Below, piece by piece: positions 20,826-44,864 of a stretch of DNA of 64,000 nucleotides. The stretch comes from Obrimoposthia wandeli (lineage: Eukaryota): NCBI GenBank assembly GCA_977020255.1, contig CDROCS010004567.1:1-64000 (forward strand). Reading direction: 5' to 3'. How positions within the stretch are numbered: position 1 is the first letter of the stretch; each line of letters opens with the position of its first letter. The position numbers and the translations under genes are program-made. The notes beneath the pieces were generated by a model. That model worked only from the letters and a program-made list of their open reading frames with translations, was not told the origin of the DNA and searched no databases.

Positions 20826-21614
20826 TTAACTGCTCTCTTTGATTGGCTGTTGGTTTTTAACAAAGCCAAGTTCAATGGAAATTGACTTACCTGCTTTGAC
20901 TAGGTGTTTGACCCATTCATCTTTACGTCTATCAATCGGTGCTGACACCGATAATCCGGCAACAACTTCACCGTATCTGTCATATAACAATACACCAATA
21001 CAACCTACACCTATTTCTGCTTCTTCATTGTCATAGGCGAAGCCTTGTTCAACACAGCGCATACATTCACGCTCTAAGCTTTCTATTTCTGAAAATGTTT
21101 TACGGGTATAGGTTGGCAAGTTTGTGCGATGAGCATATCCACTAATGCCTTCACTTCCTTCCATGCCTAACATCATTTTACCGACACCTGTTACATGAAG
21201 CGGCGCACGGCTACCAATAATTTGTTGAACATGCATCATTCTGTTGGGAATGGCCTTTTCTACGTAAATAATCACATCACCTTCACGCGTGGTGAGGTTA
21301 ATGGTTTCACCAAATTTATCTCGAAGTTTTTCCATGTAAGGTATTGCTACTTTACGAAAATCCACGTGTTGAGATTGATAATTGCTGAGCCTAATGAGTC
21401 GGCCACTTAGCTGGTACTTGCCTGAATTGTCCCGATCAACAAAATGATTATCGATAAGGGAATGTAATATGCGAAAAGCAGTAGATGGCGCTAAGTTAGT
21501 ATCAGCACTAAGCGCCTTTAATGTTACCGGCATGGTATAGCGTGATATAGCGTCTAGTAATGTGGCTGCTCTATCTATTACTTGAATGCGAGATTCTGGT
21601 TTAACTTTAGTCAT
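20826..21614 (-). CDS. bhcR: IclR-family regulator BhcR
   Basis: IQVIDRAATLL HTH; APLHVTGVGK; GFAYDNEEAEIGVGCIG; divergent from bhcBCD, as in characterised bhc clusters. Confidence 0.8.
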   Translation of the reverse strand: MTKVKPESRIQVIDRAATLLDAISRYTMPVTLKALSADTNLAPSTAFRILHSLIDNHFVDRDNSGKYQLSGRLIRLSNYQSQHVDFRKVAIPYMEKLRDKFGETINLTTREGDVIIYVEKAIPNRMMHVQQIIGSRAPLHVTGVGKMMLGMEGSEGISGYAHRTNLPTYTRKTFSEIESLERECMRCVEQGFAYDNEEAEIGVGCIGVLLYDRYGEVVAGLSVSAPIDRRKDEWVKHLVKAGKSISIELGFVKNQQPIKESS

Positions 21615-21818
21615 AATATTACCGCTTATTTACAGGCTCAGTTTTAATACCAATCAAACTAACTAAGTGATCTTTTTAAATGGTCTAAACATCCAATAAC
21701 ATTGTTGCTCTCAATCGCAGTAGCCAGCTATTGCTCAATCAAGCGTTTTGTTCTTGAAGGTTTACTCTCATTAAAATTTGACCCATTACTTATTTGAATT
21801 GCTATAACATCTCTTTTC

Positions 21819-21834
21819 TTGACTCATGTGTCAA
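21819..21834. promoter_or_regulatory. 16-bp palindrome TTGACTCATGTGTCAA (putative RutR-like TetR operator)
   Basis: Near-perfect palindrome; the same motif recurs at 31211 and 48831. Confidence 0.7.
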
Positions 21835-21903
21835 CTTTATATTTTACAATTTTTAATATAGAGCTAAAACCGACAAAAACCATCATTAATTCGAGCTTGT
21901 CGA

Positions 21904-22063
21904 TTTCACATCGTGGAATCTGTAGGTTTCCTTGAACTCAGTATTCATATAGCCCCTTATTTATCAGGGGTATGCATAGTGTTTGACCATAATAAAAAAC
22001 TGACATTTCACATGGTGGAATCCATCTTGTTTGCCTGAACCGGCTGTTTTCCATAAGGTGAAA
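21904..22063. promoter_or_regulatory. Three IclR-type sites: TTTCACATCGTGGAA (21904), TTTCACATGGTGGAA (22006), TTCCATAAGGTGAAA (22049)
   Basis: Repeated 6-3-6 imperfect palindromes between bhcR and bhcB. Confidence 0.7.
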
Positions 22064-22222
22064 TTGAAGCAAAAAAATTAGTTACAGATTAAACATCATC
22101 TACAAATTAAGAGTCACCTTGAGACTCATATAGATACATACGACTTACCACACGATTAATGTCACGGCTAAAACCACGACTAACATGACGGCTAATACCG
22201 CAAGAGATATTAAGAGGAACCT

Positions 22223-23200
22223 ATGAGCAGTTCACCTAAACCAACCATGAATATTCCAAGCTATGAGGATGTACTCGTTGCCCACGAACGTATTAAACCC
22301 TTTATTCACGAAACACCCGTATTAACCTCACGTTTCCTAAATGAATTAACAGGTGCTGAGCTGTTTTTTAAATGTGAAAACCTGCAAAAGGCAGCTGCTT
22401 TTAAAGTGCGCGGTGCCTGTAATGCTGTTTTTGGTTTAACAGACGCTGAAGCAAAAATTGGTGTTGCTACACATTCATCAGGTAACCATGCTTTATCGTT
22501 ATCTTATGCAGCCGGACGACGTGGCATACCCGTTACCGTAGTGATGCCACGTACAGCGCCGCAAGCTAAGAAAGATGCTGTCATTGGCTACGGCGGAATC
22601 ATCGTTGAATGTGAGCCTTCTACTAGCTCACGCGAAGCCGTATTTGCTGAAGTTGTTGCCGAATCAGGTGCTGATTTTGTTCATCCTTACAATGATCCAC
22701 GCGTTATCGCAGGTCAAGCCACTTGTGCTAAAGAACTCGTTAATCAAGTCCTTAATTTAGATACTGTGGTTGCGCCAATTGGCGGTGGCGGCATGATATC
22801 AGGCACCTGCTTAACACTATCTACTACTAATCCGACAATAAAAATTTATGCGGCAGAGCCTTTGAATGCTGATGATGCTGCGCGCTCATTTAAAGCCGGT
22901 CATATTATTGCCGATGATGCTCCAGAAACAATTGCCGATGGTCTAAAAGTTCCACTTAAAGATCTAACTTGGCATTTCGTTAAAAATCATGTCACCGATA
23001 TTTTAACGGCAACCGAAGACGAAATTGTCGCGGCAATGAAGCTTATTTGGATCCGCATGAAAATTGTAGTGGAGCCAAGCAGCGCGGTAACCCTAGCTAT
23101 TATTTTGAAAAACCCCGAAGTATTTAAAGGCAAGCGTATTGGGGTAATTCTCACTGGCGGTAATGTCGATTTAGATAAATTACCGTGGATGAATAAATAA
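22223..23200 (+). CDS. bhcB: Beta-hydroxyaspartate dehydratase (PLP, Ser/Thr dehydratase fold)
   Basis: FKCENLQKAAAFKVRGA, THSSGNHA, VMPRTAPQAKKD, ECEPSTSSRE, VHPYNDPRVIAGQ, GGNVDLDKLPW closely match Paracoccus BhcB as recalled; context with bhcC and bhcD. Confidence 0.88.
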   Translation: MSSSPKPTMNIPSYEDVLVAHERIKPFIHETPVLTSRFLNELTGAELFFKCENLQKAAAFKVRGACNAVFGLTDAEAKIGVATHSSGNHALSLSYAAGRRGIPVTVVMPRTAPQAKKDAVIGYGGIIVECEPSTSSREAVFAEVVAESGADFVHPYNDPRVIAGQATCAKELVNQVLNLDTVVAPIGGGGMISGTCLTLSTTNPTIKIYAAEPLNADDAARSFKAGHIIADDAPETIADGLKVPLKDLTWHFVKNHVTDILTATEDEIVAAMKLIWIRMKIVVEPSSAVTLAIILKNPEVFKGKRIGVILTGGNVDLDKLPWMNK

Positions 23201-23311
23201 GCCGACAAGTACCACAGTAAAAAATAAAACGAATTCAAATTTCGGTTCAAGTTCAAATTAAAAATCATACAAAAGCTCAATCTAAAAATTATCTAAATAT
23301 TAATTAAAATT

Positions 23312-24472
23312 ATGGAGAAGAAGATGACAACAGTAAACGATTTAGAAGTAGGTTATGACGTTCCGGCACTTCCAGGTATGGATGAAGCGGACATTCAAAC
23401 ACCTTGTTTGATTGTTGATTTAGACGCTTTAGAGCGCAACATTACTAAGATGGGACAATTCGCTAAAGAGATGGGTGTTCGCCATCGTGTGCATGGCAAA
23501 ATGCATAAATCTGTCGATATAGCACTTCTACAAGAGAAACTGGGTGATAGCTGTGGTGTATGTTGTCAAAAAGTATCAGAAGCCGAAGTTTTTGCGCGTG
23601 GCGGTATTAAAGATGTTTTAGTGTCTAACCAAGTACGTGATCCAGCAAAAATAGACCGTTTAGCACGTATACCTAAACTTGGTGCTCGTACTCTTGTTTG
23701 TGTTGATGATATTGAAAACGTTGCTGAATTAGCGGCTGCGGTTAATAAACATGACACGCAAATTGAATGTTTAGTTGAAATTGACTGTGGCGCGGGTCGT
23801 TGTGGTGTAAGTGAAGGTCAGCCAGTAGTTGATATCGCTAAAGCGATTGCCGCAACACCGGGCTTAACTTTTTCTGGTATTCAAGCTTACCAAGGCGCTA
23901 TGCAGCACATGGAAAACTTCCAAGAACGTAAAGAGAAGATCGATATCGCTGTTGGTATGGTTGCTCGTACAATCGACATGCTTAAAGCAGAAGGGCTTGA
24001 GTGTGACATCGTTGGTGGTGGCGGTACAGGTTCATATTACTTTGAAGGCAATTCAGGTGTTTTCAATGAATTACAATGTGGTTCTTATGCATTTATGGAC
24101 GCCGATTACCAACGAATTCATGATGAAAAAGGTGAACGAATTTCAGAATTTGAAAACTCATTATTCATCTTAACGTCTGTTATGAGTCACACCAAAGCTG
24201 ACAAAGCTATTTGTGATGCGGGTCTTAAAGCGCAATCAGTAGATAGTGGTTTACCGTACATTTTTGGTCGTGACGATGTTGAATACATTAAGTGTTCTGA
24301 TGAACATGGTGTTATTTCAGATGCTAACGGCGCATTAAAAATTAATGAAAAGCTAAAACTAGTACCAGGGCATTGTGATCCAACGTGTAACGTTCACGAT
24401 TACTATGTTGGCGTACGTAATGGCAAAGTTGAAACCTTATGGCCAGTTTCTGCACGTGGTAAAGCGTACTAA
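23312..24472 (+). CDS. bhcC: Beta-hydroxyaspartate aldolase (3-hydroxy-D-aspartate aldolase)
   Basis: EVGYDVPALPGMDE..IQTPCL, HGKMHKSVD (PLP Lys), ELQCGSYAFMDADY, PGHCDPTCNVHD, WPVSARGK. Confidence 0.92.
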   Translation: MEKKMTTVNDLEVGYDVPALPGMDEADIQTPCLIVDLDALERNITKMGQFAKEMGVRHRVHGKMHKSVDIALLQEKLGDSCGVCCQKVSEAEVFARGGIKDVLVSNQVRDPAKIDRLARIPKLGARTLVCVDDIENVAELAAAVNKHDTQIECLVEIDCGAGRCGVSEGQPVVDIAKAIAATPGLTFSGIQAYQGAMQHMENFQERKEKIDIAVGMVARTIDMLKAEGLECDIVGGGGTGSYYFEGNSGVFNELQCGSYAFMDADYQRIHDEKGERISEFENSLFILTSVMSHTKADKAICDAGLKAQSVDSGLPYIFGRDDVEYIKCSDEHGVISDANGALKINEKLKLVPGHCDPTCNVHDYYVGVRNGKVETLWPVSARGKAY

Positions 24473-24484
24473 TAAGCTATTTAT

Positions 24485-24509
24485 GCCCTCAGTCTTTGTT
24501 GAGGGTTTT
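24485..24509 (+). terminator. Weak intrinsic terminator or stabilising hairpin between bhcC and bhcD
   Basis: CCCTCA-gtctttgt-TGAGGG followed by TTTT. Confidence 0.4.
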
Positions 24510-24532
24510 GCTATTTTTCTAGGACATTAATT

Positions 24533-25555
24533 ATGAGTGATTCAAAAGAAAACCATTTACCAGAAAGCTCTTTACCAGTTAGAAAAGGCGTATCTGTAGT
24601 TTCAGAAGCGGTATGCCAAGAAGTTATGGGTAGAGCCGATGCTTTTACTGCGGTAGAAAACGTGTTTTCTGCTATGGCTAAAAATACCGCCTACAATTTT
24701 CCGGTAATACGTGAAGCCATTGGCCATGCGGATGCTCTCTATGGTTTTAAATCAGGCTTCGACCGTGACGGTATGGTGCTAGGTTTAAAATCAGGGGGGT
24801 ACTGGCCAGGTAATGTGCAAAAAGATCTGACTAACCACCAATCCACCGTGATTTTGTTTGATCCTGATACAGGCCAGTTAAAATCCCTTGTTGGCGGCAA
24901 CTACTTAACTGCCGTGCGTACTGCTGCCTCTTCTGCTGTTTCTATCGCGCATTTAGCCCGTAAAGATTCAAAAGTGCTAGGTATGGTAGGTGCAGGTCAT
25001 CAATCTACTTTTCAATTACGTGCTGCTGTTGAGCAACGTGACTTTGAAAAAATTGTTTGCTGGAACTTCCACCCTGAACAAATACCTAACCTTGCCGCAG
25101 TGGCTGAAGAATTAGGTTTACCGTTTGAATCAGTAACGCGCGAAGAACTTTGTGCTCAAGCGGATGTCATTATTACCATTACTTCAGCTTTTGAGGCGTT
25201 AATAGATAAAGACTGGATCAAGCCCGGCACTCACATTGCGTGTATGGGAACCGACACTATAGGTAAGCAAGAAGTTGATGCTAAATTACTGACAGTAGCT
25301 AAGGTCTTTACCGATGAATTAGCGCAATCAATTATGCTGGGTGAAGCCCAACATGCGATTGCACAAAAACTCATTCATCAGAGCGATATTGTGCCAATTG
25401 GTGAAGTGATTAACGGCACTAAAACCGGCCGTACTTCAGCAGAGGATATTACCTTGTTTGATGGTACTGGTGTTGGCTTACAAGATTTAGCTGTAGCCTC
25501 AGTAGCTGCTGAATTAGCTGAAGCTAAAGGGCAGGTTACTTACTTCAACTTATAA
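24533..25555 (+). CDS. bhcD: Iminosuccinate reductase (ornithine cyclodeaminase/mu-crystallin family)
   Basis: AYNFPVIREAIGHADALYGFK.GFD, GGYWP.N, NHQSTV.LFDPDTG, GAGHQS.FQ, FDGTGVGLQDLAVA. Confidence 0.9.
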   Translation: MSDSKENHLPESSLPVRKGVSVVSEAVCQEVMGRADAFTAVENVFSAMAKNTAYNFPVIREAIGHADALYGFKSGFDRDGMVLGLKSGGYWPGNVQKDLTNHQSTVILFDPDTGQLKSLVGGNYLTAVRTAASSAVSIAHLARKDSKVLGMVGAGHQSTFQLRAAVEQRDFEKIVCWNFHPEQIPNLAAVAEELGLPFESVTREELCAQADVIITITSAFEALIDKDWIKPGTHIACMGTDTIGKQEVDAKLLTVAKVFTDELAQSIMLGEAQHAIAQKLIHQSDIVPIGEVINGTKTGRTSAEDITLFDGTGVGLQDLAVASVAAELAEAKGQVTYFNL

Positions 25556-25797
25556 CACTACTTTTTAGCCAGATAAGTTAATAAATAAGCCTTTTCAAAG
25601 GCAACAATTCACTATGGCTGTTTATTCATTTAAACAGTCATTTTTTGCTGTCTAAAATTAACTCGTTAACAACATAATCCTAAAAAAGTCCTGAAATAAA
25701 AGTGATGTTAATTATGTGAAATTATCAGCCATTAAGTTAACGTAGTAATAGACTTTGATTTTCTTATTAGAGCGTACAATTACGCTCGCTAGAATAA

Positions 25798-26229
25798 ATG
25801 GAGATGACAGTGTTAGCAGATAAATTTTGCTTAAAATTAGAAAGCCCAACGGTTGCAGACTTTTTGACATTACGCAGTAGAGTGGGATGGGGCGATCTTG
25901 ATGCGAACCTCGCCGAAAATAGCTTAAATAATAGCTTGTTCCATGTGAACATTCGACACGAGAACCAACTTGTTGGTATGGGAAGAGTCGTTGGTGATGG
26001 CGCTATGTATTTTTACATTCAAGATGTGATTGTAGACCCAAGCTACCAAAAAATGGGTATTGGCGCGGCGTTAATGGATCAGATAGAAGACTATTTATCT
26101 GATGCCACTAACCAAGGTTCTACTATTGGTTTGTTGGCTGCACAGGGCAAAGAGGCCTTTTATAGTCGTTATGGTTACACCCAAAGACCTAATAGTTCTT
26201 TAGGTCACGGCATGTGTAAGTTTATATAA
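25798..26229 (+). CDS. GNAT-family acetyltransferase
   Basis: GMGRVVGDG...IQDVIVDPSYQKMGIG, FYSRYGY. Confidence 0.85.
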   Translation: MEMTVLADKFCLKLESPTVADFLTLRSRVGWGDLDANLAENSLNNSLFHVNIRHENQLVGMGRVVGDGAMYFYIQDVIVDPSYQKMGIGAALMDQIEDYLSDATNQGSTIGLLAAQGKEAFYSRYGYTQRPNSSLGHGMCKFI

Positions 26230-26371
26230 AACTCACCAAACAGAACGGTTAGGGCGAAACTTGACGGTATCTAGACTATAAATTATGTGGGATATCGCTA
26301 GAATACTTAGCTATAGTTAATCATCCATTGCTAACCACCAATGAGCAATTCATTAAATAAGGTTCATCATT

Positions 26372-26929
26372 ATGTTTAAGCCGTTCACATTAGTTGCTTT
26401 ACTCTTCGTAGGTCTTTCATCAGCCGTTTTCGCAGAGACACTTAAATTATCTAGCCAGGATATTGCTGATGGAGAGTTCATGTCTAAAGCCCAAGAGTTT
26501 AATGGCTTTGGTTGTGCCGGTGGTGACTTATCGCCACAGCTAACGTGGTCGGGTGTACCTGAAGGTACGAAAAGTTTTGCGATTACGGCCTATGATCCTG
26601 ATGCACCGACAGGCAGTGGTTGGTGGCATTGGCAAATAGTGAATATTCCTCATACTGTGACCGAAATAGCCGCAGGCGCCGGCAGTGCTAAAAATGACTT
26701 AGCACCCGAGGGCAGTGTGCAAATAGCCAATGATTTCGGTTACCGAGGATTTGGTGGCGCTTGCCCGCCAGAAGGTCACGGAGTGCATCATTACCGCTTT
26801 ACCGTACATGCATTATCGGTAGAGAAGCTAGAATTGCCAAAAGAGGCGTCAGGCGCGTTAACGGGCTATATGATTAATGCGAACACTATTGCGACAAGCA
26901 CAATAGAGTCTTTATATAAACGCGACTAA
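26372..26929 (+). CDS. YbhB/YbcL (PEBP/RKIP) family exported protein
   Basis: Signal peptide; GDLSPQLTW, YDPDAPTGSGWWHW, GGACPP.GHG.H.YRFTV.AL. Confidence 0.9.
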   Translation: MFKPFTLVALLFVGLSSAVFAETLKLSSQDIADGEFMSKAQEFNGFGCAGGDLSPQLTWSGVPEGTKSFAITAYDPDAPTGSGWWHWQIVNIPHTVTEIAAGAGSAKNDLAPEGSVQIANDFGYRGFGGACPPEGHGVHHYRFTVHALSVEKLELPKEASGALTGYMINANTIATSTIESLYKRD

Positions 26930-26940
26930 TACCACCATTT

Positions 26941-26966
26941 AAGTAGAGCCACTTAAGGCTCTACTT
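26941..26966. terminator. Bidirectional terminator hairpin
   Basis: AAGTAGAGCC-acttaa-GGCTCTACTT between convergent genes. Confidence 0.7.
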
Positions 26967-26989
26967 ATACCAACCCTATTAAGTCATAG

Positions 26990-28129
26990 TTAATTTACTT
27001 GCGCGGATACAGTGCCACTTACTTTTCGACTATTTTTCCAACGTCTCCAAGAAAGCATCGCGCCGGTATACACTAACAAGCATGCAAACAACGAAGCCAA
27101 ACCTGCAATAGTTTGTCCAAATGGCCCAAAGACTTCACCAGTATGAAGAAACCTAATATAGCTGCGTAGCTTGCTATAGTTAGATAGTTGTTCAAATGTT
27201 TGTTCTTGAACCACATCACCTGTTGAGGAATCTAATAATATCGAAACACGTTTTTGTGGTTCACCACCATTGCCCATATCCACACGGTAAATTTTGCTGC
27301 TAGTCGGGGCATTATCCAATGAGAATTGAATGCTTTGCCACTGTGGGTAATATTGTCTTATTTTGGTTAATTGCTTAACAATAGGCAGTAGTAATTCACC
27401 TTGTTGAGCTGAAACTTCTACAGGCTTAGCGAGCGAAACTGATTCGGTAGATACATAGTTTTTAAGCGTTTGACCTGGCCATTTGTATGAAAAAAATACC
27501 GCAGTAACCACCACTACAAAAAGTACCGGTGCGATATAAATACCAAAAACATTATGCCATTGATAATTTCTCGCACTCTTGTTTGGGTAATTTCCAGACA
27601 AGGTTAACCTTTGCTTGAATGCTCTGTTGTTAAATCGTTTAGGTAGCCATAAATAAAGCCCAGAAAGAATTAAAACAATAAAAATGATATTGGCAATACC
27701 ATTGACCTCTCGCCCGGTTTGACTGAATTTTCCATCGAAGGTTAGCCAACGATGAAAAGCTCTTAATTTACGGAAAAAAGTTTTGGTGCCTTGACCGGGT
27801 ATCGCTATTTCTGCCCCAGTATAAGGATTAAGATAAGCTAATGTTTTTCTGCCATCTTTAATAATAATCGGTGCATTGGGCTGATTTTCTACCACAACTT
27901 GAGCGACTTTTTTGCTTGGGTATTGTTTAGCTATAATTAAAAGCTGTGACAGGGGCAATTTTTTATTTGATGCGATTGGTGCTTCAGGATAATCGCTACG
28001 TTCGGCGGCTTTAATCATCTGACGTTCATAGGTTAATGCAACACCCGTGAGAGACATTAAAAAAATAAAAATAGCAGCACTACAGCCTATTATTAAATGC
28101 AGCCAAAAAAAAGTTTTTCTTATATTCAT
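26990..28129 (-). CDS. PepSY-associated TM-helix protein (iron-regulated membrane protein family)
   Basis: FFWLHLIIG, LSLTGVAL, RAFHRWL, QWHNVFG, FLHTG; ATG at 28129. Confidence 0.85.
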   Translation of the reverse strand: MNIRKTFFWLHLIIGCSAAIFIFLMSLTGVALTYERQMIKAAERSDYPEAPIASNKKLPLSQLLIIAKQYPSKKVAQVVVENQPNAPIIIKDGRKTLAYLNPYTGAEIAIPGQGTKTFFRKLRAFHRWLTFDGKFSQTGREVNGIANIIFIVLILSGLYLWLPKRFNNRAFKQRLTLSGNYPNKSARNYQWHNVFGIYIAPVLFVVVVTAVFFSYKWPGQTLKNYVSTESVSLAKPVEVSAQQGELLLPIVKQLTKIRQYYPQWQSIQFSLDNAPTSSKIYRVDMGNGGEPQKRVSILLDSSTGDVVQEQTFEQLSNYSKLRSYIRFLHTGEVFGPFGQTIAGLASLFACLLVYTGAMLSWRRWKNSRKVSGTVSAQVN

Positions 28130-28304
28130 GAGTTTACCTAAAGCTAGCACTGAAAAGCCCTGATATATCCCTGAGCTAGAAAACAAGGTAAGTCTTTTAT
28201 GGACTTAATACGCGTTTAGATAACATTGCAGGGGGAGCTTTGTCAGTATTGAAGTGACATTTTGAGGATTGTAAAACATTTTTATAAAATAAAATATAAT
28301 TGGA

Positions 28305-28319
28305 TGCGAATCATTCGTT
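28305..28319. promoter_or_regulatory. Possible Fur box TGCGAAT-C-ATTCGTT
   Basis: 7-1-7 arrangement resembling TGATAAT-N-ATTATCA, upstream of a PepSY_TM gene. Confidence 0.4.
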
Positions 28320-28370
28320 ATTAGATGTGTTTTTTGCAGATATCATGATCTAGTTATAAAAGATGGCTAT

Positions 28371-28397
28371 AAAAGCCGCTAAAAGTAGCGGCTTTTT
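28371..28397 (-). terminator. Intrinsic terminator of the malic enzyme gene
   Basis: AAAAGCCGCTA-aaag-TAGCGGCTTTT. Confidence 0.85.
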
Positions 28398-28422
28398 CGA
28401 TTAAATGAATTAAGGCAGTAGT

Positions 28423-29670
28423 TTAGATTTCATTCATATAACCATCAGGTAAAGGCAGTGCAGCAACGCCTGAGTCAACCGCAGCTTTGGCAACGGCTAA
28501 GGCAACGTTTTTGCATAACCTTGGATCCATCGGGCGAGGGATAATGTAACCTTTACCAAAGGATAATTCCTTTTCATTACTTGCTTTTAAAACACTTTCC
28601 GGTACATCTTGCTTGGCTAGCTCTCTAATCGCATGGACCGCAGCTACTTTCATTTCGTTATTAATCTTACGCGCTCGTACATCTAAAGCACCGCGGAAAA
28701 TAAAAGGGAAACATAAAACATTGTTCACTTGATTTGGGTAATCAGAACGACCTGTTGCCATAATTAAATCACTTCTAACACTGTGCGCTAATTCAGGTTT
28801 TATTTCAGGGTCTGGGTTAGAACACGCAAACACAACAGGGTTGTCTGCCATTTTCTTTAGCTGATCCGTGCTAAGTAAGTTAGGACCAGAAACACCAATA
28901 AAAACATCAGCGCCTTCAATGACATCATCTAAGGTTCGTTTGTCGGTGTTGTTGGCAAAACGGGTTTTATATTCAGATAAATCATCACGGCGGGTATGAA
29001 TAACGCCTTTCGTGTCGAGCATGTATATTTTTTCACGCATTGCGCCACATTGAATTAGCAACTCCATACATGCAATAGCAGCTGCACCGGCACCTAAACA
29101 AACGATATCAGCTTGTTCAATTTTCTTATTTTGAATTTCTAGGGCATTAATCATGGCAGCAGCCGTCACGATAGCAGTACCGTGCTGGTCATCATGGAAT
29201 ACCGGTATTTTACAGCGCTCATTTAATGCTTTTTCAATGATAAAACACTCGGGTGCTTTGATATCTTCTAAGTTAATACCTCCAAAACTATCCGCAATAG
29301 CAGCCACCGTATTGATGAACTCTTCAGGTGTTTTATGCGTTACTTCAATATCGAACGAATTAATGTCTGCAAAACGTTTAAATAATAAGGCTTTACCCTC
29401 CATTACTGGCTTAGATGCCATCGGCCCTAAATTACCTAAACCTAATACGGCAGTACCGTTTGAGATAACGGCAACGGTATTGCCTTTTCCTGTGTATTTA
29501 TAAACATCGTCAGGATTTTTGGCGATTTCTCGACAAGGCTCAGCGACGCCAGGACTATAGGCTAGTGATAAATCAGCACTTGTTTCGGCGGGTTTTGTGA
29601 TAGCAATGGCAATTTTTCCAGCCGTTGGTAAGGCGTGATAATCCAGTGCTGCTTGTTTAAAATCAGACAT
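28423..29670 (-). CDS. maeB: Malic enzyme, short form without PTA domain
   Basis: LSLAYSPGVAEPC, GKALLFKRFA, INLEDIKAPECF, FHDDQHGTAIV, GRSDYPNQVNN; ATG at 29670 (MSDFKQAAL). Confidence 0.9.
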   Translation of the reverse strand: MSDFKQAALDYHALPTAGKIAIAITKPAETSADLSLAYSPGVAEPCREIAKNPDDVYKYTGKGNTVAVISNGTAVLGLGNLGPMASKPVMEGKALLFKRFADINSFDIEVTHKTPEEFINTVAAIADSFGGINLEDIKAPECFIIEKALNERCKIPVFHDDQHGTAIVTAAAMINALEIQNKKIEQADIVCLGAGAAAIACMELLIQCGAMREKIYMLDTKGVIHTRRDDLSEYKTRFANNTDKRTLDDVIEGADVFIGVSGPNLLSTDQLKKMADNPVVFACSNPDPEIKPELAHSVRSDLIMATGRSDYPNQVNNVLCFPFIFRGALDVRARKINNEMKVAAVHAIRELAKQDVPESVLKASNEKELSFGKGYIIPRPMDPRLCKNVALAVAKAAVDSGVAALPLPDGYMNEI

Positions 29671-29879
29671 TATTGACCTACTTCTTATAGTGTTAAGGTT
29701 AGAAATTAAGACGGTAATCAACGCTTTCTTTAGGGAACATGTTGAATACCAAAATTAATCCGTTTGGTATGAGTTGTCGTAAAGTTATATCGTTGTTTTT
29801 GTTTTAATAAGCTTCAGATAAATCAGTGAAATGCACCTTTCATCAAGAAAGTCCCCTAATACCTGTTAGCAAGGATATA

Positions 29880-30142
29880 TACCCGCTCCACTTGAAGATG
29901 CTCGTTTCAGGAAGCCGGAGCGAGTCATAATCAAGGCACATTTTTTTGTTAAGGGTTATTCCCTTAAAAACAAATGTAACGATGAATATGTTTTGCTCAG
30001 GTCTGTCCAAAGGGCTGGTTTATAAACGCTTTATGCCACGTTATTGATTTCGACAATAGAATAACTATTCTCTTCAATCAATGCCTTGCCTAAAGGCGTT
30101 TATAATTCCAGCTGAATCCTGCATCTTCAAGTGGAACGGGTA
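29880..30142 (+). mobile_element. MITE family 1, intact copy (263 bp including flanking TA)
   Basis: TA-CCCGCTCCACTTGAAGATGC ... GCATCTTCAAGTGGAACGGG-TA; about 22-bp TIR; no ORF. Confidence 0.9.
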
Positions 30143-30220
30143 TAAGTAGGGTTGAAGAGTGCAAAATACTGCGCCACAGTAGTGGGGTTCAGTATGGCGT
30201 TTTCAAAAAATGTGGATAGT

Positions 30221-30262
30221 AAAAAGGCTGCCAATAAACACAATGAAATTGGCAGCTTATTT
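30221..30262 (-). terminator. Terminator of the outer-membrane channel gene
   Basis: GCTGCCAAT...ATTGGCAGC stem with T-tract on the minus strand. Confidence 0.65.
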
Positions 30263-30294
30263 TAATTTACGGGTATAAATAAATTAATTTGGTA

Positions 30295-31122
30295 TTAGAA
30301 ACGCCATACAGCAAGAAGTTGTGCAGCGTTATCATCAGTACCTTTCTCACCTAGTTTGTTTTTCCAGTATTGGTATTCAACACCAACGAATAAACGCTGT
30401 GCTTTATGACCTAATACTTCACCTAAATCTAAGCGAATTTGTGGTTGAAATAGAATCCATGATTCGAGCTCTGTTGTGCCAAAATTATTAACTTGAGTAC
30501 GGCCGTCAATGTATTCTAAATGACCTTCAATGCTCCAGCTTGTTGAACCAATTTTAAAGGGATATGCCCAAGCAAAATCAACCATAAAGCTAGAGTCTTC
30601 ATCAACTACGGTAAATACAGGAGAATCTGCACTGCCACCACCTTGATGGATATAACCAGTAACATCAATTTGCGCAAAGGCAAAACCGGGTAAATCTAAG
30701 GCGAATCTCACACCAGGTAATACCCAAGCACTGTCTACTTCAGGAGCGAAGTTAAAACCAGCAACAATACCAATATCTTTTACTGGGCCAAAGCTAAGAT
30801 CATTACCACTAATTGCGCCTAAGCTAAAGTTTGAATACCACTCGCCGTAAAGCTCGCTTGAATCTGCTACTGGGAAGTTAGCATCGTTATTTACGGAGTA
30901 ACGAGAATAATCCATAAAGAAGAAGTTATCGCCGTATTCCCAGCCACCTGCATGTTGGAAAGTGATGATAGTAGTGTCAGCGGTGCCACCGGTACCTACT
31001 CGTTCTAATTCACCTAGTGCTTGTAATTGTACTTCTGTATTTCCCCAGATCTCTGCTGAAACCATTGGCGCATTTAACGCAGCGGTTAATGCGAGGGCGG
31101 TAAGTGGTGCTGAAATTTTCAT
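30295..31122 (-). CDS. Nucleoside-specific outer-membrane channel (Tsx/OmpK/DUF5020-like)
   Basis: Signal peptide; TFQHAGGWEYGDNFFFMD, ELYGEWYS, GVEYQYWKNKLG; terminal Phe; purine-catabolic context. Confidence 0.75.
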   Translation of the reverse strand: MKISAPLTALALTAALNAPMVSAEIWGNTEVQLQALGELERVGTGGTADTTIITFQHAGGWEYGDNFFFMDYSRYSVNNDANFPVADSSELYGEWYSNFSLGAISGNDLSFGPVKDIGIVAGFNFAPEVDSAWVLPGVRFALDLPGFAFAQIDVTGYIHQGGGSADSPVFTVVDEDSSFMVDFAWAYPFKIGSTSWSIEGHLEYIDGRTQVNNFGTTELESWILFQPQIRLDLGEVLGHKAQRLFVGVEYQYWKNKLGEKGTDDNAAQLLAVWRF

Positions 31123-31210
31123 ATTGTCTCTCTCAATGTAATTTTAGTTATGATTTTAATTTTAATTTTAATTTTTTTCAATATGTCTATGTTTCATTGT
31201 TTTTCGTAAC

Positions 31211-31226
31211 TTGACACATGTGTCAG
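31211..31226. promoter_or_regulatory. 16-bp palindrome TTGACACATGTGTCAG
   Basis: Perfect 14-bp core TGACACATGTGTCA in the divergent channel/aminotransferase promoter. Confidence 0.75.
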
Positions 31227-31305
31227 GTTGCGATTTACTACGATACATCAGGTTGTTTTATAAACACAACTAAAAATTAAAACTAAAATAGAAGGTAAAG
31301 CAATT

Positions 31306-32427
31306 ATGACATTTAAATCATTCAATCCACCACAAAGAATTTTAATGGGCCCTGGTCCTTCAGATGTAAGTGCACGAGTATTGTCCGCATTGGCTAGGCC
31401 AACGATTGGTCATCTTGATCCGTTATTTATCAATATGATGGATGAAGTAAAAACGCTACTTCAATACGCTTTCCAAACCAAAAATGAATTCACTATCGCC
31501 TTATCAGCACCGGGTTCAGCCGGGATGGAAGCATGTTTTGTGAACTTAGTTGAAGCGGGCGACAAAGTGATTGTTTGTCGTAATGGTGTTTTTGGTGACC
31601 GTATGATTCAGAACGTTACCAGAATAGGTGCAGAGGCCGTGGTTGTTGACTCTCCTTGGGGGCGTGCAGTTGAAACGCATAAGGTAAAAGCTGCGTTACA
31701 TGACCACCCAGATGCTAAATTCTTAGCCTTTGTTCATGCAGAAACCTCAACGGGTGCGCTGTCAGATGCTAAAGCCCTATGTAAAATGGCTCAAGAGCAT
31801 GATTGCTTGACGATTGTCGATGCAGTGACATCATTAGGAGGCGTAGAGCTGAAAGTGGATGAATGGGGCATAGACGCTATCTATTCGGGTACGCAAAAAT
31901 GTATGTCTTGTGTACCAGGTATATCGCCCCTTTCCTTTAGCCCTAAGGCTGTAGCAGTAGTACAGAATCGTAAAACTCAAATACAAAGTTGGTTCTTAGA
32001 CCAAACGTTAGTGATGGGCTATTGGTCTGGTGAAGGTAAGCGTAGTTACCATCATACTGCCCCAGTAAACTCTTTATATGCCTTACATGAAGCCTTGGTA
32101 ATGCTTCATGATGAAGGCTTAGAAAATAGCTGGGCACGTCATAAAACACAGCACGAAGTATTAGCTAAGGGACTGAAAGAGTTAGGTATTGAGTTCATCG
32201 TACCTGAAGAAGAGCGCTTACCTCAGTTAAACGCTATCTACATTCCTGATGGTGCTGATGATGCTAAAATACGAGATTACCTATTAGAGCACTACAATCT
32301 TGAAATAGGTGCTGGTTTAGGTGCTTTTGCTGGTAAAGCATGGCGTATAGGTCTTATGGGACATGCGGCTAAAAGTGAGAATGTTGCCTTATGTTTAACG
32401 GCTTTAAAAGACGCGTTACACCAATAA
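31306..32427 (+). CDS. Class V aminotransferase, alanine-glyoxylate/serine-pyruvate (AGXT) type
   Basis: RILMGPGPS, PTIGHLDP, VHAETSTG, IVDAVTSLGG, YSGTQKC (PLP Lys), YHHTAPVNSLY, WRIGLMG. Confidence 0.85.
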   Translation: MTFKSFNPPQRILMGPGPSDVSARVLSALARPTIGHLDPLFINMMDEVKTLLQYAFQTKNEFTIALSAPGSAGMEACFVNLVEAGDKVIVCRNGVFGDRMIQNVTRIGAEAVVVDSPWGRAVETHKVKAALHDHPDAKFLAFVHAETSTGALSDAKALCKMAQEHDCLTIVDAVTSLGGVELKVDEWGIDAIYSGTQKCMSCVPGISPLSFSPKAVAVVQNRKTQIQSWFLDQTLVMGYWSGEGKRSYHHTAPVNSLYALHEALVMLHDEGLENSWARHKTQHEVLAKGLKELGIEFIVPEEERLPQLNAIYIPDGADDAKIRDYLLEHYNLEIGAGLGAFAGKAWRIGLMGHAAKSENVALCLTALKDALHQ

Positions 32428-33450: not shown

Positions 33451-34077
33451 TTAAGATAAACCACAGCCTTTGAGGATGATTGAAGTCAGTGACTGAACTA
33501 CATCATCAAAATCATCATCGTTCATTGCCTCTTTACCAAAACCTGCCAATACTTGCACATTAAAGTCAGCATAATGCTGTGTGGAACTCCAAATAAGGAA
33601 TAACAGGTGATGTGGGTTGATTACGTCTATTTGGCCTTGTTTAACCCAGGTTTCAATGATGGTAATTTTTTCATCTAACCATTGCTTAAATTCGGTATGT
33701 AAATAGTCTTTAAGAATAGGCGCGCCATGAATTACTTCACTGGCAAATATTTTTGAACCATCGGGATCATGCTTGGCATGCATGATTTTTTCATGAATAT
33801 AAGCAGTAAGAATTGTTTTAGGATCATCATCAATACTTAAGGTATCGAAACTCGTATTCCAACTGACAATTATTTCAGAGAGTAATTGCTGATAAAGATC
33901 AGTTTTGTCATCGAAATAATAATGAATATTTGCTCGAGGAATATTTGCACGTTCAGCAATGCGCTTAATTGACGCGCCTTTAAAGCCATGTGTAACAAAC
34001 TCTGTTTTGGCCGCCGTTAAAATAAGCGCAACATTCCTTTGGCGAACTTGCCCTACAGATTCTTTTTTTACCGACAC
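33451..34077 (-). CDS. TetR-family regulator, RutR-like
   Basis: ILTAAKTEFVTHGFKGASIKRIAERANI.RANIHYYF; RutR-type C-terminus SKIFASEVIHGAP...LLFLIWSSTQHYADF..QV. Confidence 0.85.
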   Translation of the reverse strand: MSVKKESVGQVRQRNVALILTAAKTEFVTHGFKGASIKRIAERANIPRANIHYYFDDKTDLYQQLLSEIIVSWNTSFDTLSIDDDPKTILTAYIHEKIMHAKHDPDGSKIFASEVIHGAPILKDYLHTEFKQWLDEKITIIETWVKQGQIDVINPHHLLFLIWSSTQHYADFNVQVLAGFGKEAMNDDDFDDVVQSLTSIILKGCGLS

Positions 34078-34550: not shown

Positions 34551-36737
34551 TTACACGGCTTTAACTTCCTGTCGCCTTTGGTGTAATAACGGTTCGGTAT
34601 AACCACTTGGTTGTTCTTTGCCTTGGAAAATAAGATCCGCGGCGGCTTTAAAAGCAATACTTTCACCAAAATCTGTCCCGATAGCAATGTAGCTGCTATC
34701 GGCAGCATTTTGTTGATCGACAACTTCAGCCATGCGCTGTAGTGATTCAAGTACTTGGCTTTCACTGATCACACCATGATGAAGCCAGTTGCAAACATGT
34801 TGACTTGATATTCGTAAGGTTGCTCTATCTTCCATGCGGGCTATATTGTCGATATCAGGTACTTTTGAGCAACCAATGCCTTGATTTACCCAGCGAACCA
34901 CATAACCCAGTAAACCTTGAATATTGTTATCTACTTCTTTTTGAATTGCCGCTATTGATAATTCAGTTTGATTTTTCAGTAAAGGGATAGTCAATAACTC
35001 GCTTAAATCATCAATGGTTCCTGGTAAAGAAAACTCGGCTTGCATGGCACTTTGAATCTCTTGAACATTGACTTTGTGGTAATGCATTACGTGTAACGTA
35101 GCGGCAGTAGGTGAGGGAACCCAAGCACAATTCGCCCCTGATTTTGGATGGGCTATTTTGCTGGTAACCATTTCCGACATTTGATCTGGTATTGCCCACA
35201 TGCCTTTACCAATTTGCGCTTTACCTTGCAGGCCGGCTTGCAAACCAATTCTAACATTTCTATTTTCATAGGCTGTTATCCAGGGTTCATCTTTCATCAA
35301 GGCTTTTTGAGCCATAGCACCTGCTTGCATACTGGTATGAATTTCATCACCGGTGCGGTCTAAAAAACCAGTATTAATGAACGCAAGGCGTGTTTGGGCG
35401 GCGCGAATACACTCCTTTAGATTGGCAGAGGTGCGGCGTTCTTCATCCATGATTCCCATTTTTATGGTGTTTTGGGCTAAACCCAAATGACGTTCAATGG
35501 CACTAAATAAATCATGACTAAAGGCGACTTCTTCAGGGCCATGCATTTTAGGTTTTACAATGTAAATGCTGCCTTGTTTAGAGTTTTTAAATTTCGAGGT
35601 GCCCTTTAAATCGTGCAGTGAAATTAAACTGGTGATTAGGCCATCAACAATGCCCTCAGGTACTTTTTCATTCTTTGCTGTGACAATAGCATTGGTGGTC
35701 ATTAAGTGACCCACATTACGAATGAATTGCAAGCTTCTACCCGGTAGAGTGATTTCTTTTTGATCAGGTGATAAATAATTACGGTCATGGTTTAGGGTAC
35801 GGGTAATGGTTCTAGTGCCTTTTTGAATAATCTCAGCAAGGTCGCCTTTCATTAATCCTAACCAGTTACGATAAACTGAGGTTTTGTCCGAGGCATCTAC
35901 CGCGGCAATAGAGTCTTCACAGTCTTGAATAGTACTTAACGCGGACTCTAACACCACATCTTTAACAGCAGCGGCATCGGTTTTGCCAACAACATTGTCT
36001 TTATCTATTTGGATTTCAATGTGTAAACCATTATGACGGCAAAGTAGCGTAGAGGGATCACCTGTTGAGCCGTTGTAACCAACAAACTGTTCGGCATCTT
36101 TTAACTGCACTTGTTCACCCGTGAAAAGGGTCACAGTAAAGGTTTTTTTTACGATATGGTACTTCACGGCATCAATATGACTACCACGGGTTAACGGTAA
36201 GGTTTCATCTAAAAATCGGCGCGCGTACGCTTGCACTCTACGTCCACGAACAGGATTGAAATCTTTCGTTTGTTTAGCGCCATTATCGTCACCAATAACA
36301 TCGGTACCATATAAAGCGTCATACAAACTGCCCCATCGAGCGTTCGCGGCATTCAGGGCAAATCGTGCATTCATCAAAGGCACTACAAGCTGAGGGCCCG
36401 CGATAAGGGCAACTTCATCATCAACATTTTGAGTAGAGATAGTAAAATCTGCTTTCTCTGTGACCAAATATCCTATTTCCTTTAAAAACAACTCATAGCG
36501 CTGTTGGTTAAAAGGTTGGTTTGCTGAGTCAGTATGCCAAACATCAATATGCGCTTGTAAACTAGCTCTTGTCGCTAATAGCTGTTGATTACGCGGAGTA
36601 AACTCAGCTAAAACTTCAGCAACAGAATCCCAGAAGTCATCGGCATCAATATTAAGACCAGGCAATACTTCATGATTGACTAAATTAACTAAACAGCCTG
36701 CAACCTTATAACCGTGCTTGATTGTTTTTTGCTTCAT
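34551..36737 (-). CDS. glcB: Malate synthase G
   Basis: GPQLVVPLMNARFALNAANARWGSLYDALYG, IQDCEDS, RNVGHLM, MDEERRTS, MEDRATLRISSQH. Confidence 0.97.
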   Translation of the reverse strand: MKQKTIKHGYKVAGCLVNLVNHEVLPGLNIDADDFWDSVAEVLAEFTPRNQQLLATRASLQAHIDVWHTDSANQPFNQQRYELFLKEIGYLVTEKADFTISTQNVDDEVALIAGPQLVVPLMNARFALNAANARWGSLYDALYGTDVIGDDNGAKQTKDFNPVRGRRVQAYARRFLDETLPLTRGSHIDAVKYHIVKKTFTVTLFTGEQVQLKDAEQFVGYNGSTGDPSTLLCRHNGLHIEIQIDKDNVVGKTDAAAVKDVVLESALSTIQDCEDSIAAVDASDKTSVYRNWLGLMKGDLAEIIQKGTRTITRTLNHDRNYLSPDQKEITLPGRSLQFIRNVGHLMTTNAIVTAKNEKVPEGIVDGLITSLISLHDLKGTSKFKNSKQGSIYIVKPKMHGPEEVAFSHDLFSAIERHLGLAQNTIKMGIMDEERRTSANLKECIRAAQTRLAFINTGFLDRTGDEIHTSMQAGAMAQKALMKDEPWITAYENRNVRIGLQAGLQGKAQIGKGMWAIPDQMSEMVTSKIAHPKSGANCAWVPSPTAATLHVMHYHKVNVQEIQSAMQAEFSLPGTIDDLSELLTIPLLKNQTELSIAAIQKEVDNNIQGLLGYVVRWVNQGIGCSKVPDIDNIARMEDRATLRISSQHVCNWLHHGVISESQVLESLQRMAEVVDQQNAADSSYIAIGTDFGESIAFKAAADLIFQGKEQPSGYTEPLLHQRRQEVKAV

Positions 36738-36740
36738 TTC

Positions 36741-37946
36741 TTATCCTTTATCTTTTTCTTTATCTTTGCTTAACCAAAGTGATAGCGTTAGACGTTCTTC
36801 CTCTGTCATTTGGGTTTTGTTCATAAACGGCATGTCTTTGGAGTTGACAACGCGCGCTTCAATTCTCGGTGCCCATTGTTTGATAGAAGCAATGTCTGAA
36901 AAAATAACGCCACCTTGAGGAGATTTAAATACATCATCAGTTGGTGCTTCTGAATGACAGGCACTGCAACGGGTTTCAATAATATGTTGTACTTGCGCAT
37001 TACTAACACCTTGCTGTTTTTGTTCAGCAGATAGTTCAACTGTCTTTGGAGCAATAGCATAGGCAAGCACAATAGTGGCGAGAATAGAGCTCACTAATAT
37101 CATAGGTTTTTGCTTACCAAAATGACGTAAAACAAAATACTGACGTACGGCTGCAGTGATTAATATGATGGCCATTAACACTAACCAATTTGCACTATGG
37201 TTATAGGTAATTGGGTAGTGATTTGAAATCATAATAAATAACACGGGTAAGGTGATATAGGTATTGTGCGTTGAGCGTAACTTGGCGTTAAGGCCATATT
37301 TAGAGTCAGGCGTAGCACCTTCTTCTACCGCTTTTACTAAGGCGCGCTGTGATGGCATAATGCCAAAAAATACATTGCCAGCCATGATGGTACCTAAGAT
37401 AGCACCCATATGCATGTAAGCACCACGGGCACTAAATACCTGGGTTAAGCCGTAAGATAAAGCTGTAGCAATAGCGAATAAAATAACGGCTAACACTAAC
37501 CCGTGGTCTTTAAGTTTTGTTCGTACTAATAACTCATAACTACCGACACCAATAACAATCGAGCCTAGTCCTAAGCCAATAGCTTGCCATTGAGTTAAAT
37601 CTTTCACGCGCGGATCAATTAGGTAAGATTCAGCGCCAACATAAAACATAAGCGAGAGTAGTAAGAAACCTGTGATCCAAGTGGTGTAAGCTTCCCACTT
37701 AAACCAATGTAATGTGGTTGGCATTTTAGGTGGTGCTAATTTATATTTTGCTACTTCATAGAAGCCACCGCCATGAATGGCCCAAAGATCACCTGAAATG
37801 CCTTTTTCAGCTTTTTCTTCGGGTGGCTTTTCAAGATGGTTATCTAACCAAACAAAGTAAAATGATGCACCGATCCAAGCGATACCAACGATAAGATGTG
37901 CGAAGCGAATGATTAGATTTAACCACTCAGTGATATACGGGTCCAT
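36741..37946 (-). CDS. puuD: Urate oxidase PuuD (membrane protein with C-terminal cytochrome c)
   Basis: RFAHLIVGIAWIGASFYFVWLDN, WAIHGGGFYEV.KY, WFKWEAYTTWITGF, RSTHNTY.TLPVLFIMISNHY; CxxCH in RCSACH. Confidence 0.88.
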   Translation of the reverse strand: MDPYITEWLNLIIRFAHLIVGIAWIGASFYFVWLDNHLEKPPEEKAEKGISGDLWAIHGGGFYEVAKYKLAPPKMPTTLHWFKWEAYTTWITGFLLLSLMFYVGAESYLIDPRVKDLTQWQAIGLGLGSIVIGVGSYELLVRTKLKDHGLVLAVILFAIATALSYGLTQVFSARGAYMHMGAILGTIMAGNVFFGIMPSQRALVKAVEEGATPDSKYGLNAKLRSTHNTYITLPVLFIMISNHYPITYNHSANWLVLMAIILITAAVRQYFVLRHFGKQKPMILVSSILATIVLAYAIAPKTVELSAEQKQQGVSNAQVQHIIETRCSACHSEAPTDDVFKSPQGGVIFSDIASIKQWAPRIEARVVNSKDMPFMNKTQMTEEERLTLSLWLSKDKEKDKG

Positions 37947-39749: not shown

Positions 39750-40265
39750 TTATTGCTTAGCTGCTAATGTGATCACAAGCGAACCGTCGAGTTTTTCAAC
39801 ATCACAATTATCACCTTCTCCGCCGCGATCGACCACGAGAAAGTCACTGACTTCATTAAGCGCTAAACAAAAGTGATGCCAAGTACCTTTGTGGTAATTT
39901 ACGCCTTGCTCACCGCTTGCTAAAAACACTTTAATGGCTGATATATCAAGCTCACCTGCGGGTGCAACCACAACCACATAAGGTTGCTTGCCCATAGGTA
40001 TAAATGCTTGGCTGCCTAAAGGATGGCGCTCCATCATTTCGACAGGTAAAGGAAAAGCCAGCGGGGTGGAACGAAAAATATTAATTAAGGTTTTACCCTG
40101 TTGCTCAGCAACATCAACATCAGCAAGATTATGATAACGCATAGTATGGCCATCATTAATGGCGAAATGTTCAGCACTTTCGGACACTGAAATTACATCC
40201 CCATAAGCGGAGAAATTCTCTGCCGTTAGCTCTTGGGGTACAACATTAATGATTTTACTGGTCAT
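39750..40265 (-). CDS. allA: Ureidoglycolate lyase
   Basis: LTAENFSAYGDVI, MERHPLGSQAFIP, QGVNYHKGTWHH, FLVVDRGG. Confidence 0.92.
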   Translation of the reverse strand: MTSKIINVVPQELTAENFSAYGDVISVSESAEHFAINDGHTMRYHNLADVDVAEQQGKTLINIFRSTPLAFPLPVEMMERHPLGSQAFIPMGKQPYVVVVAPAGELDISAIKVFLASGEQGVNYHKGTWHHFCLALNEVSDFLVVDRGGEGDNCDVEKLDGSLVITLAAKQ

Positions 40266-40364
40266 CTTAATCTTCTCTGTTAACTGTTAATATTTTTCTA
40301 CTGGCTAGAAACTATTGTTCTTTATTACTTCGTGCTTACTTGGGTACTAATACTTAAAGGCAAG

Positions 40365-40706: not shown

Positions 40707-40739
40707 GTTCGTTCCTTTTATCTTAGCTGTTACTGTGAA

Positions 40740-41261: not shown

Positions 41262-41326
41262 GTTCGTTTCCTTGTTCTTTATCTTTAGCAATAGCATTTA
41301 AAAAATGCCATTGCTAAGCGTGTTAA

Positions 41327-44851: not shown

Positions 44852-44864
44852 GATGATATTCCTA

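Follow-up and report, generated by a model that had tools for sequence, protein, structure and literature searches.

We examined a 64,000-nucleotide stretch of DNA, hereafter the window (positions 1 to 64,000 of the forward strand of contig CDROCS010004567.1, GenBank assembly GCA_977020255.1, filed under Obrimoposthia wandeli), for a locus of the beta-hydroxyaspartate pathway that lacks the aminotransferase gene bhcA. The beta-hydroxyaspartate cycle (BHAC) is regarded as a four-enzyme, glycolate-driven marine carbon route and is being engineered into plants and Pseudomonas. In the window, bhcB, bhcC and bhcD lie contiguously on the plus strand as one operon, and their products all exceed the curated cutoffs: beta-hydroxyaspartate dehydratase (bhcB, 22223-23200; model NF045641, 588 bits against a cutoff of 550), beta-hydroxyaspartate aldolase, which acts on glycine and glyoxylate (bhcC, 23312-24472; NF045642, 727 against 690), and iminosuccinate reductase (bhcD, 24533-25555; NF045643, 566 against 500). 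The operon is closed by a terminator-like hairpin on the same strand (25614-25641), an 11-pair stem followed by a T-run. Opposite bhcB lies a bhcR-like gene for an IclR-family regulator (20826-21614, minus strand; Pfam HTH_IclR and IclR_C). An earlier note, made from the letters of the window alone, had described a regulator divergent from bhcB-bhcC-bhcD; this arrangement was borne out, with the regulator scoring below the cutoff for BhcR.

BhcR was the best NCBIfam model for this regulator, yet the match of 152 bits lies under the cutoff of 350. It shares 73-78% identity with its counterparts at canonical bhc loci in Bermanella and Marinomonas and retains the residues (Gly, Asp and Ser-x-Ser) through which IclR and AllR contact glyoxylate (PMC11323563). 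At the position of IclR residue 161 it carries Val, where BhcR carries Ile (PMC11323563). Logan contigs from two marine metatranscriptomes fall on bhcR, bhcB and bhcD; this is weak evidence of expression, and DNA carry-over is possible. A related gene was found in one relative with no BhcC match (locus L102, positions 8808-10951 of contig G168:C4), where a bhcR-like IclR gene (76% identical) lies tail-to-tail with an ortholog of the aminotransferase described below. The pair is flanked by unrelated genes (speA, speB, a methyl-accepting chemotaxis protein and carbonic anhydrase). This bhcR-like gene may be a remnant of a lost bhcBCD cluster or may regulate the aminotransferase gene.

The BhcC protein of the window matches that of Colwellia demingiae ACAM 459 with 100% identity, followed by proteins of other Colwellia. 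To judge by this identity, the window is Colwellia DNA, in keeping with the gammaproteobacterial origin proposed in the earlier note. The source assembly, at 1.35 Gb in 6,912 contigs, is host-plus-microbes or otherwise mixed, and a blank from it alone proves little. Statements about absence from whole genomes therefore rest on the genomes of five isolates that share this layout: C. demingiae, C. marinimaniae, C. ponticola, Colwellia sp. C1TZA3 and Shewanella hanedai.

We searched for BhcA with the model for L-aspartate-glyoxylate aminotransferase (NF045640, cutoff 650 bits). No canonical BhcA was detected at this cutoff in the window, the source assembly or the five isolate genomes. The best matches in the window, the assembly and the isolates scored 208-214 bits, and each time they were the AGXT-type (alanine-glyoxylate aminotransferase) enzyme of the window or its ortholog. 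As a positive control, aminotransferases encoded between bhcR and bhcB in gammaproteobacterial loci (Bermanella, Marinomonas, Motiliproteus and three further loci) scored 709-720 bits. We thus rejected the possibility, raised in the earlier note, that a true bhcA lies elsewhere in the genome.

We compared 80 bhcC loci: 11 from Colwellia, one from S. hanedai and 68 others, in 61 of which the state of bhcA could be judged. In all 11 Colwellia loci and in S. hanedai, bhcR faces bhcB directly with no bhcA between them, while bhcA occupies this slot in 59 of the 61 others. We also noted two alphaproteobacterial metagenome-assembled genomes (Neomegalonema and Rhodospirillales) in which bhcB has no aminotransferase gene upstream at the locus, a pattern that may be an assembly artefact. 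A literature search found no description of a bhcA-less or purine-regulated form of the pathway.

The three enzymes cluster tightly (~84-92% identity) with proteins of canonical bhcABCD loci. In a tree of BhcB and BhcC, the Colwellia and S. hanedai proteins fall in a clade with those of bhcA-positive Marinomonas and Bermanella (support of 96 in the Shimodaira-Hasegawa-like approximate likelihood ratio test), and BhcC identity between these groups reaches 92%. This placement among bhcA-positive relatives, together with the high identity, argues that the module was horizontally transferred from an Oceanospirillales-like bhcABCD cluster. The transferred module then lost bhcA, in either one event or two; the tree is compatible with both, since the grouping of Bermanella with one Colwellia subclade has a support of only 86%.

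The divergent control region between bhcR and bhcB (21615-22222, 608 bp) contains no open reading frame longer than 44 amino acids. The earlier note had described it as a non-coding region in the slot where bhcA normally lies. It is indeed non-coding and contains no bhcA, but it is not an emptied bhcA slot, as it holds no remnant of the gene and has a repeat inside it. When 13 spacers were queried by tblastn with two true BhcA proteins, all matches were at chance level (E of 0.2 or more), and we therefore rejected a degraded bhcA in the spacer. The corresponding spacers of other Colwellia are 337-503 bp long. The extra length in the window is due to an inserted interspersed repeat of ~125 bp (~21646-21770), similar to miniature inverted-repeat transposable elements or repetitive extragenic palindromic elements. 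Public runs aligned to the region show a 10- to 100-fold depth spike and many contig breakpoints here, and the C. demingiae genome has at least 37 copies (73-89% identity). In an alignment of the 12 bhcA-less loci (11 from Colwellia and that of S. hanedai), only the window and one other locus (L023) carry the repeat.

Two kinds of conserved element stand out in this alignment. The first is a ATTTCAYATNGTGRAAT box, present in three copies between the second element and bhcB: two direct (21903-21920 and 22005-22022) and one inverted (22049-22067), from repeat families D1, I1 and I2. These boxes are kept in all 12 bhcA-less loci, S. hanedai included, and are likely the binding site of BhcR. The second is a 16-bp palindrome, TTGACTCATGTGTCAA, at 21819-21834, a putative operator of a purine regulon.

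The palindrome belongs to a small set. The shared motif, TTGAC[T/A]CATGTGTCA, occurs at 21819, 31211 and 48831, all three sites being intergenic, and its consensus is TTGACACATGTGTCAA. Six strand-matches were counted in the window against 0.19 expected, a number that was reached in none of 100 shuffled sequences. The second copy (TTGACACATGTGTCAG, 31211-31226) lies 80 bp upstream of the start of the AGXT-type aminotransferase gene and 89 bp from the start of a divergent tsx-like gene. The third (TTGACACAAGTGTCAG, 48831-48846) lies 77 bp upstream of xdhA, which encodes a xanthine dehydrogenase subunit, and the same site is found in C. demingiae. In the whole C. demingiae genome (5.2 Mb), there are only four such sites: at xdhA, at a xanthine permease gene, between tsx and the AGXT gene, and at bhcR. 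The permease site is 84 bp upstream of a gene whose product passes the pbuX cutoff. Where no repeat intervenes, the palindrome lies within ~90 bp of a start codon, at 77-89 bp for xdhA, the AGXT gene, tsx and pbuX. Within the bhc spacer, bhcR is the gene closest to the palindrome; the distance is 31-81 bp in Colwellia free of the repeat and 205 bp in the window, where the repeat sits between the two.

The half-sites of the palindrome are kept in 10 of 11 Colwellia bhc spacers, in which mean column identity is otherwise 47%, and in none of nine canonical bhcA-containing loci. On this pattern, they are a phylogenetic footprint in the Colwellia spacers. The earlier note had proposed an operator common to the aminotransferase gene and the bhc promoter. 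The shared site is real, at 21819 and 31211, but it is proximal to bhcR rather than to bhcB. Judged by its additional presence at xdhA and the xanthine permease gene, it turns out to mark a purine regulon. We did not adopt a reading of its TTGAC as a simple -35 box, since the spacing from the palindrome to a conserved AATATA box varies by 11-12 bp among species. Across the intergenic region of the third palindrome, xdhA has a divergent neighbor of the HupE/UreJ family (nickel transport; 48755-49231, 49232-49930), which could connect the supply of nickel or urease with the purine regulon.

A candidate for the protein that binds the palindrome is encoded nearby. The gene at 33451-34077 (minus strand) specifies a TetR-family regulator with TetR_N and TetR_C_3 (YcdC) domains, the same architecture as E. 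coli RutR, its best solved relative (129 bits). With this architecture and a TTGAC..GTCAA palindrome at four promoters genome-wide, the system has the features of a RutR-type regulon. The RUT box of E. coli RutR is likewise 16 bp long, TTGACCANNTGGTCAA, and its outer TTGAC and GTCAA pentamers and their spacing are identical to those of the Colwellia palindrome (PMC2952853). The two sites differ at the inner positions (ACA|TGT in Colwellia against CCA|TGG in E. coli). In the recognition helix, K51 and L55 of RutR are replaced by R and H in the window protein, changes that would fit the altered inner operator bases. The targets also differ, as the Colwellia sites lie at purine catabolism genes while E. 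coli RutR acts on pyrimidine catabolism. A RutR-type TetR regulator, PA1504, adjoins allantoin and glyoxylate genes in P. aeruginosa, where it was noted without a test (PMC12694930).

Following a CBS protein and this TetR regulator is a string of minus-strand purine catabolism genes. From upstream to downstream, it encodes XdhA, XdhB, XdhC, allantoinase, allantoicase, 2-oxo-4-hydroxy-4-carboxy-5-ureidoimidazoline (OHCU) decarboxylase, 5-hydroxyisourate (HIU) hydrolase, ureidoglycolate lyase, guanine deaminase, PuuD-type urate oxidase and malate synthase G. The xanthine dehydrogenase genes (43952-48754) pass TIGRFAM cutoffs, and the genes from allantoinase to ureidoglycolate lyase (39750-43858) all pass NCBIfam cutoffs. 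Among the latter are allantoicase (41327-42379) and ureidoglycolate lyase (39750-40265), the two enzymes from which the earlier note had derived glyoxylate; both are present as described. The urate oxidase (36741-37946) matches Pfam Urate_ox_N at 423 bits, and malate synthase G (34551-36737), a competing sink for glyoxylate, matches NF002825 at 1183 bits. The guanine deaminase gene (38291-39637) has an in-frame TGA at 39017-39019 and is intact (458 amino acids) in C. demingiae ACAM 459. Compared to ACAM 459, the window has lost 2 nt at one point and 1 nt, within an A-run, ~10 nt away; this reflects either an indel error of the assembly or a mutation of very recent date.

We asked which other routes to and from glyoxylate the five isolate genomes encode. 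None has a glyoxylate carboligase (gcl) above cutoff. The glycerate pathway is therefore unavailable, and we rejected it as the real glyoxylate sink; bhcBCD would be the only recognizable route of net glyoxylate assimilation. None of the five encodes a GlcD at the cutoff of 568 bits, in line with the earlier note, which had the pathway driven by purines instead of glycolate. The nearest match was a C. ponticola protein at 524 bits, and the other four genomes have no plausible candidate. Since a GlcD-type oxidase is missing from four of the five, glycolate is not the obvious feed, and we rejected it as such, with the limit that other glycolate-oxidizing enzymes were not searched for.

The aminotransferase gene (31306-32427, plus strand) starts 5.75 kb downstream of bhcD, close to the 6 kb given in the earlier note, and its product, which matches the class V family PF00266 at 88 bits, carries the GPGPS, GHLDP and YHHTAP motifs that had been read there as AGXT-type features. 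Divergent from it is the gene for the Tsx-like outer-membrane channel (30295-31122, minus strand; Pfam Channel_Tsx, 29.4 bits against a cutoff of 27.2), and beyond that a short-form malic enzyme identified by family scans (28423-29721, minus strand). Between the hairpin of the bhc operon and these genes are genes for a GNAT protein, a PEBP/YbhB protein and a PepSY_TM protein. On the BhcA model, the aminotransferase scores 209 bits against the cutoff of 650. The earlier note had called it unlike Paracoccus BhcA. The low score agrees with this, but BhcA is itself a class V enzyme and ~30% identical, which makes it a distant homolog rather than an unrelated protein.

Among proteins of solved structure, the window enzyme is most similar to alanine-glyoxylate aminotransferases (AGTs): that of Nostoc (PDB 1vjo, 345 bits), the insect AGT/3-hydroxykynurenine transaminase (HKT) enzymes (281-287 bits) and mammalian AGT (263-277 bits). 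The alignments are full-length, and all compared catalytic motifs are kept. The SGTQK, ETSTG, VDAVTSLGG and WRIGLMG segments align with the Nostoc, insect and mouse AGT motifs, and the pyridoxal phosphate (PLP) lysine, the PLP-binding Asp, the Ser/Thr motifs and the C-terminal Arg that binds the substrate carboxylate are intact. By analogy, we infer that glyoxylate is the amino acceptor and glycine the product. The window protein differs from the Nostoc and animal enzymes in being a bacterial enzyme within a purine regulon, paired with a Tsx-like channel.

A related function is that of PucG and Klebsiella ureidoglycine-glyoxylate aminotransferase (UGXT), which would make the enzyme specific for (S)-ureidoglycine, yielding oxalurate and glycine, rather than a general alanine-glyoxylate enzyme. 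PucG (3isl, 245 bits) and UGXT (3nnk, 222 bits) are significant homologs, the gene is a member of the purine regulon, and glyoxylate would still be turned into glycine by an enzyme of this kind. The AGT-type enzymes score far higher, however, and the island uses allantoicase and ureidoglycolate lyase, which bypass ureidoglycine. For these reasons, we rejected an identity with PucG and regard ureidoglycine specificity as very improbable.

How this aminotransferase relates to the bhc genes can be judged from its distribution. Among 201 sampled genomes of the family, an AGXT ortholog (at least 61% identity) is encoded in 120 and a BhcC above cutoff in only four. In all four BhcC-positive genomes and in S. 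hanedai, a copy of the AGXT gene lies within ~10 kb of bhcC, on a side, upstream or downstream, that varies. Two AGXT copies are present in three of the four BhcC-positive genomes and in four of the 116 others, a comparison among close relatives and so not an independent statistic. In BhcC-negative relatives, the AGXT ortholog is often paired with a Tsx-like gene, and many have variants of the palindrome upstream. The triad of malic enzyme, Tsx and AGXT genes is syntenic in several relatives (loci L090-L092, L100 and L104), some of them without BhcC; together with malate synthase G, its products could form a purine-linked loop for glyoxylate oxidation. Three multi-megabase contigs of the source assembly (C253, C506 and C2834) encode AGXT homologs 72-76% identical to that of the window, with neither the palindrome nor a Tsx gene nearby. 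These probably represent other Alteromonadales genomes, or a second paralog, in the mixed assembly.

The model that we consider best, and that we hold to be rather probable, is that bhcR-bhcBCD was horizontally acquired, works without bhcA, lies within and is co-regulated with purine catabolism, and is probably completed by the resident AGXT. In this model, purines would be converted to glyoxylate and urea by XdhABC, PuuD, HIU hydrolase, OHCU decarboxylase, allantoinase, allantoicase and ureidoglycolate lyase. The resident AGXT-type aminotransferase would turn part of the glyoxylate into glycine, with alanine or serine probably serving as donor, and BhcC would condense this glycine with a second glyoxylate to form beta-hydroxyaspartate. 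BhcB would then yield iminosuccinate, which BhcD would reduce to L-aspartate. With no dedicated BhcA to regenerate the amino donor from aspartate, the pathway would be open and closed by general transaminases. In genomes without glyoxylate carboligase, net formation of C4 compounds from the glyoxylate of purines would run through the bhc route, and the oxidative outlet would be malate synthase G, possibly with malic enzyme. Control would have two tiers. The RutR-type TetR protein is the predicted repressor at the palindromes of the xdhA, xanthine permease, tsx/AGXT and bhcR promoters, and BhcR, responding to glyoxylate, would act at its own boxes before bhcB.

A stronger version of this model is that BhcA is dispensable: cold-marine Colwellia, and by transfer S. 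hanedai, would run an open, nitrogen-conserving route from purine glyoxylate to aspartate that uses an existing AGXT and a two-tier cascade, headed by a RutR-type repressor that senses purines, and forms their sole net carbon-assimilating outlet on purines. We put this version forward tentatively, as possible rather than probable.

On the grounds of comparative genomics, the locus is a plausible new variant of a known pathway. What the genomes show are the identities of the genes, the missing bhcA, gcl and (mostly) glcD, the conserved layout and the placement of the palindrome genome-wide; the enzymatic fluxes, the amino donor, the protein that binds the palindrome and the direction of regulation are inferred from these. 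Several observations weigh against the favored model or limit it. A distance of ~390 bp separates the palindrome from bhcB, and the promoter-proximal gene is bhcR; the palindrome has decayed in the spacers of S. hanedai and of one Colwellia locus (L020). A scan of the spacer for a sigma-70 consensus promoter gave no match, which is uninformative. Purine genes also occur within 10 kb of the bhc genes in 11 of the 68 non-Colwellia loci. In these cases, ureidoglycolate lyase, PuuD, HIU hydrolase or allantoicase genes lie within 10 kb of bhcD, and the taxa include Amphritea, Yoonia, Tropicibacter, Roseicyclus, Pelagibaca and others, several of them Rhodobacteraceae. Purine feeding is thus probably general and not a Colwellia invention. 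These gene neighborhoods suggest that the BHAC and purine catabolism are linked in genomes more widely than has been described.

Other points concern the aminotransferase. AGXT is common in the family and carries the same operator even where BhcC is missing, which makes its primary role older than the bhc pathway and not dependent on it; to judge by this distribution, the gene was not recruited specifically for the pathway. A second AGXT paralog (76% identical) lies among housekeeping genes in C. demingiae and has no palindrome. GlyA (serine hydroxymethyltransferase) and threonine aldolase may be other sources of glycine. The genes between bhcD and AGXT (GNAT, PEBP, PepSY and malic enzyme) vary among species, and the adjacency might therefore reflect an insertion hotspot. 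All of this would fit a different explanation, in which bhcBCD does assimilate glyoxylate, general metabolism supplies the glycine (through the second AGXT, serine hydroxymethyltransferase, threonine aldolase or import), and the nearby AGXT is incidental. The AGXT gene would then have belonged to the purine regulon for longer, with a role in detoxifying glyoxylate or salvaging nitrogen, and the bhc module would have been inserted into the purine island. Against this explanation, the AGXT gene has stayed close to bhcC in all four sampled BhcC-positive genomes and in S. hanedai despite rearrangements, it shares its operator with bhcR, and the nearby copy is the top match to the BhcA model in each of these genomes. 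On balance, we consider an incidental AGXT unlikely.

The fate of glyoxylate raises a further difficulty for the favored model. Malate synthase G is encoded in the purine string and could take all the glyoxylate; with the conserved malic enzyme, it could oxidize glyoxylate without a BHAC step. In a further explanation, the bhcA-less cluster would not assimilate glyoxylate at all and would instead catabolize external beta-hydroxyaspartate or related amino acids, with BhcB and BhcD leading to aspartate, or BhcC to glycine and glyoxylate, and with the glyoxylate from purines passing wholly to malate synthase G. In its favor, hydroxyaspartate degradation was the first role known for BhcB and BhcC homologs, the BhcA step that defines the cycle is missing, and glcB lies inside the purine gene string. 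However, the proteins score as BhcB, BhcC and BhcD equivalogs with the close similarity to canonical bhcABCD loci given above. The regulator retains its glyoxylate-contact residues, and a purine operator lies at bhcR. In addition, without gcl there would otherwise be no route of net glyoxylate assimilation, and no transporter is linked to the bhc operon. A purely catabolic role is thus, in our judgment, quite improbable.

The favored model, assimilation of purine-derived glyoxylate by bhcBCD with AGXT, can be compared to known pathways. The Colwellia locus has in common with the BhcABCD and BhcR system of Paracoccus denitrificans and marine Proteobacteria the order bhcR<->bhc(B)CD, the BhcB, BhcC and BhcD equivalogs, and a divergent IclR-type regulator with the glyoxylate-contact residues. 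Unlike the canonical BHAC, the Colwellia genomes have no BhcA in the locus or elsewhere, most have no glcDEF, and a purine operator lies at bhcR. The glycine-forming step would also differ, as it is presumably carried out by an AGXT-type enzyme ~30% identical to BhcA. Aspartate therefore need not be the donor, and the result would be an open pathway rather than a self-contained cycle. In the E. coli all/gcl system and P. aeruginosa PA1498-PA1502, whose allantoin pathways lead into the glycerate route, the glyoxylate from purines or allantoin likewise goes to a dedicated, co-regulated assimilation module (PMC12694930). In Colwellia, where no gcl was found, this module would be bhcBCD and AGXT in place of Gcl, Hyi, GlxR and GlxK.

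If this interpretation is correct, the aminotransferase step of the beta-hydroxyaspartate pathway would be exchangeable, which would be useful for engineering and for the choice of amino donor. Surveys that demand all four genes, or that use bhcA as a marker, would undercount users of the pathway in the ocean. The RutR-type regulators that lie beside purine and glyoxylate genes in Gammaproteobacteria, and that are poorly understood, would gain a concrete regulon. Finally, the ecology of the pathway would extend to the turnover of purines and nucleic acids, a substantial pool of dissolved organic nitrogen in cold oceans and sea ice.

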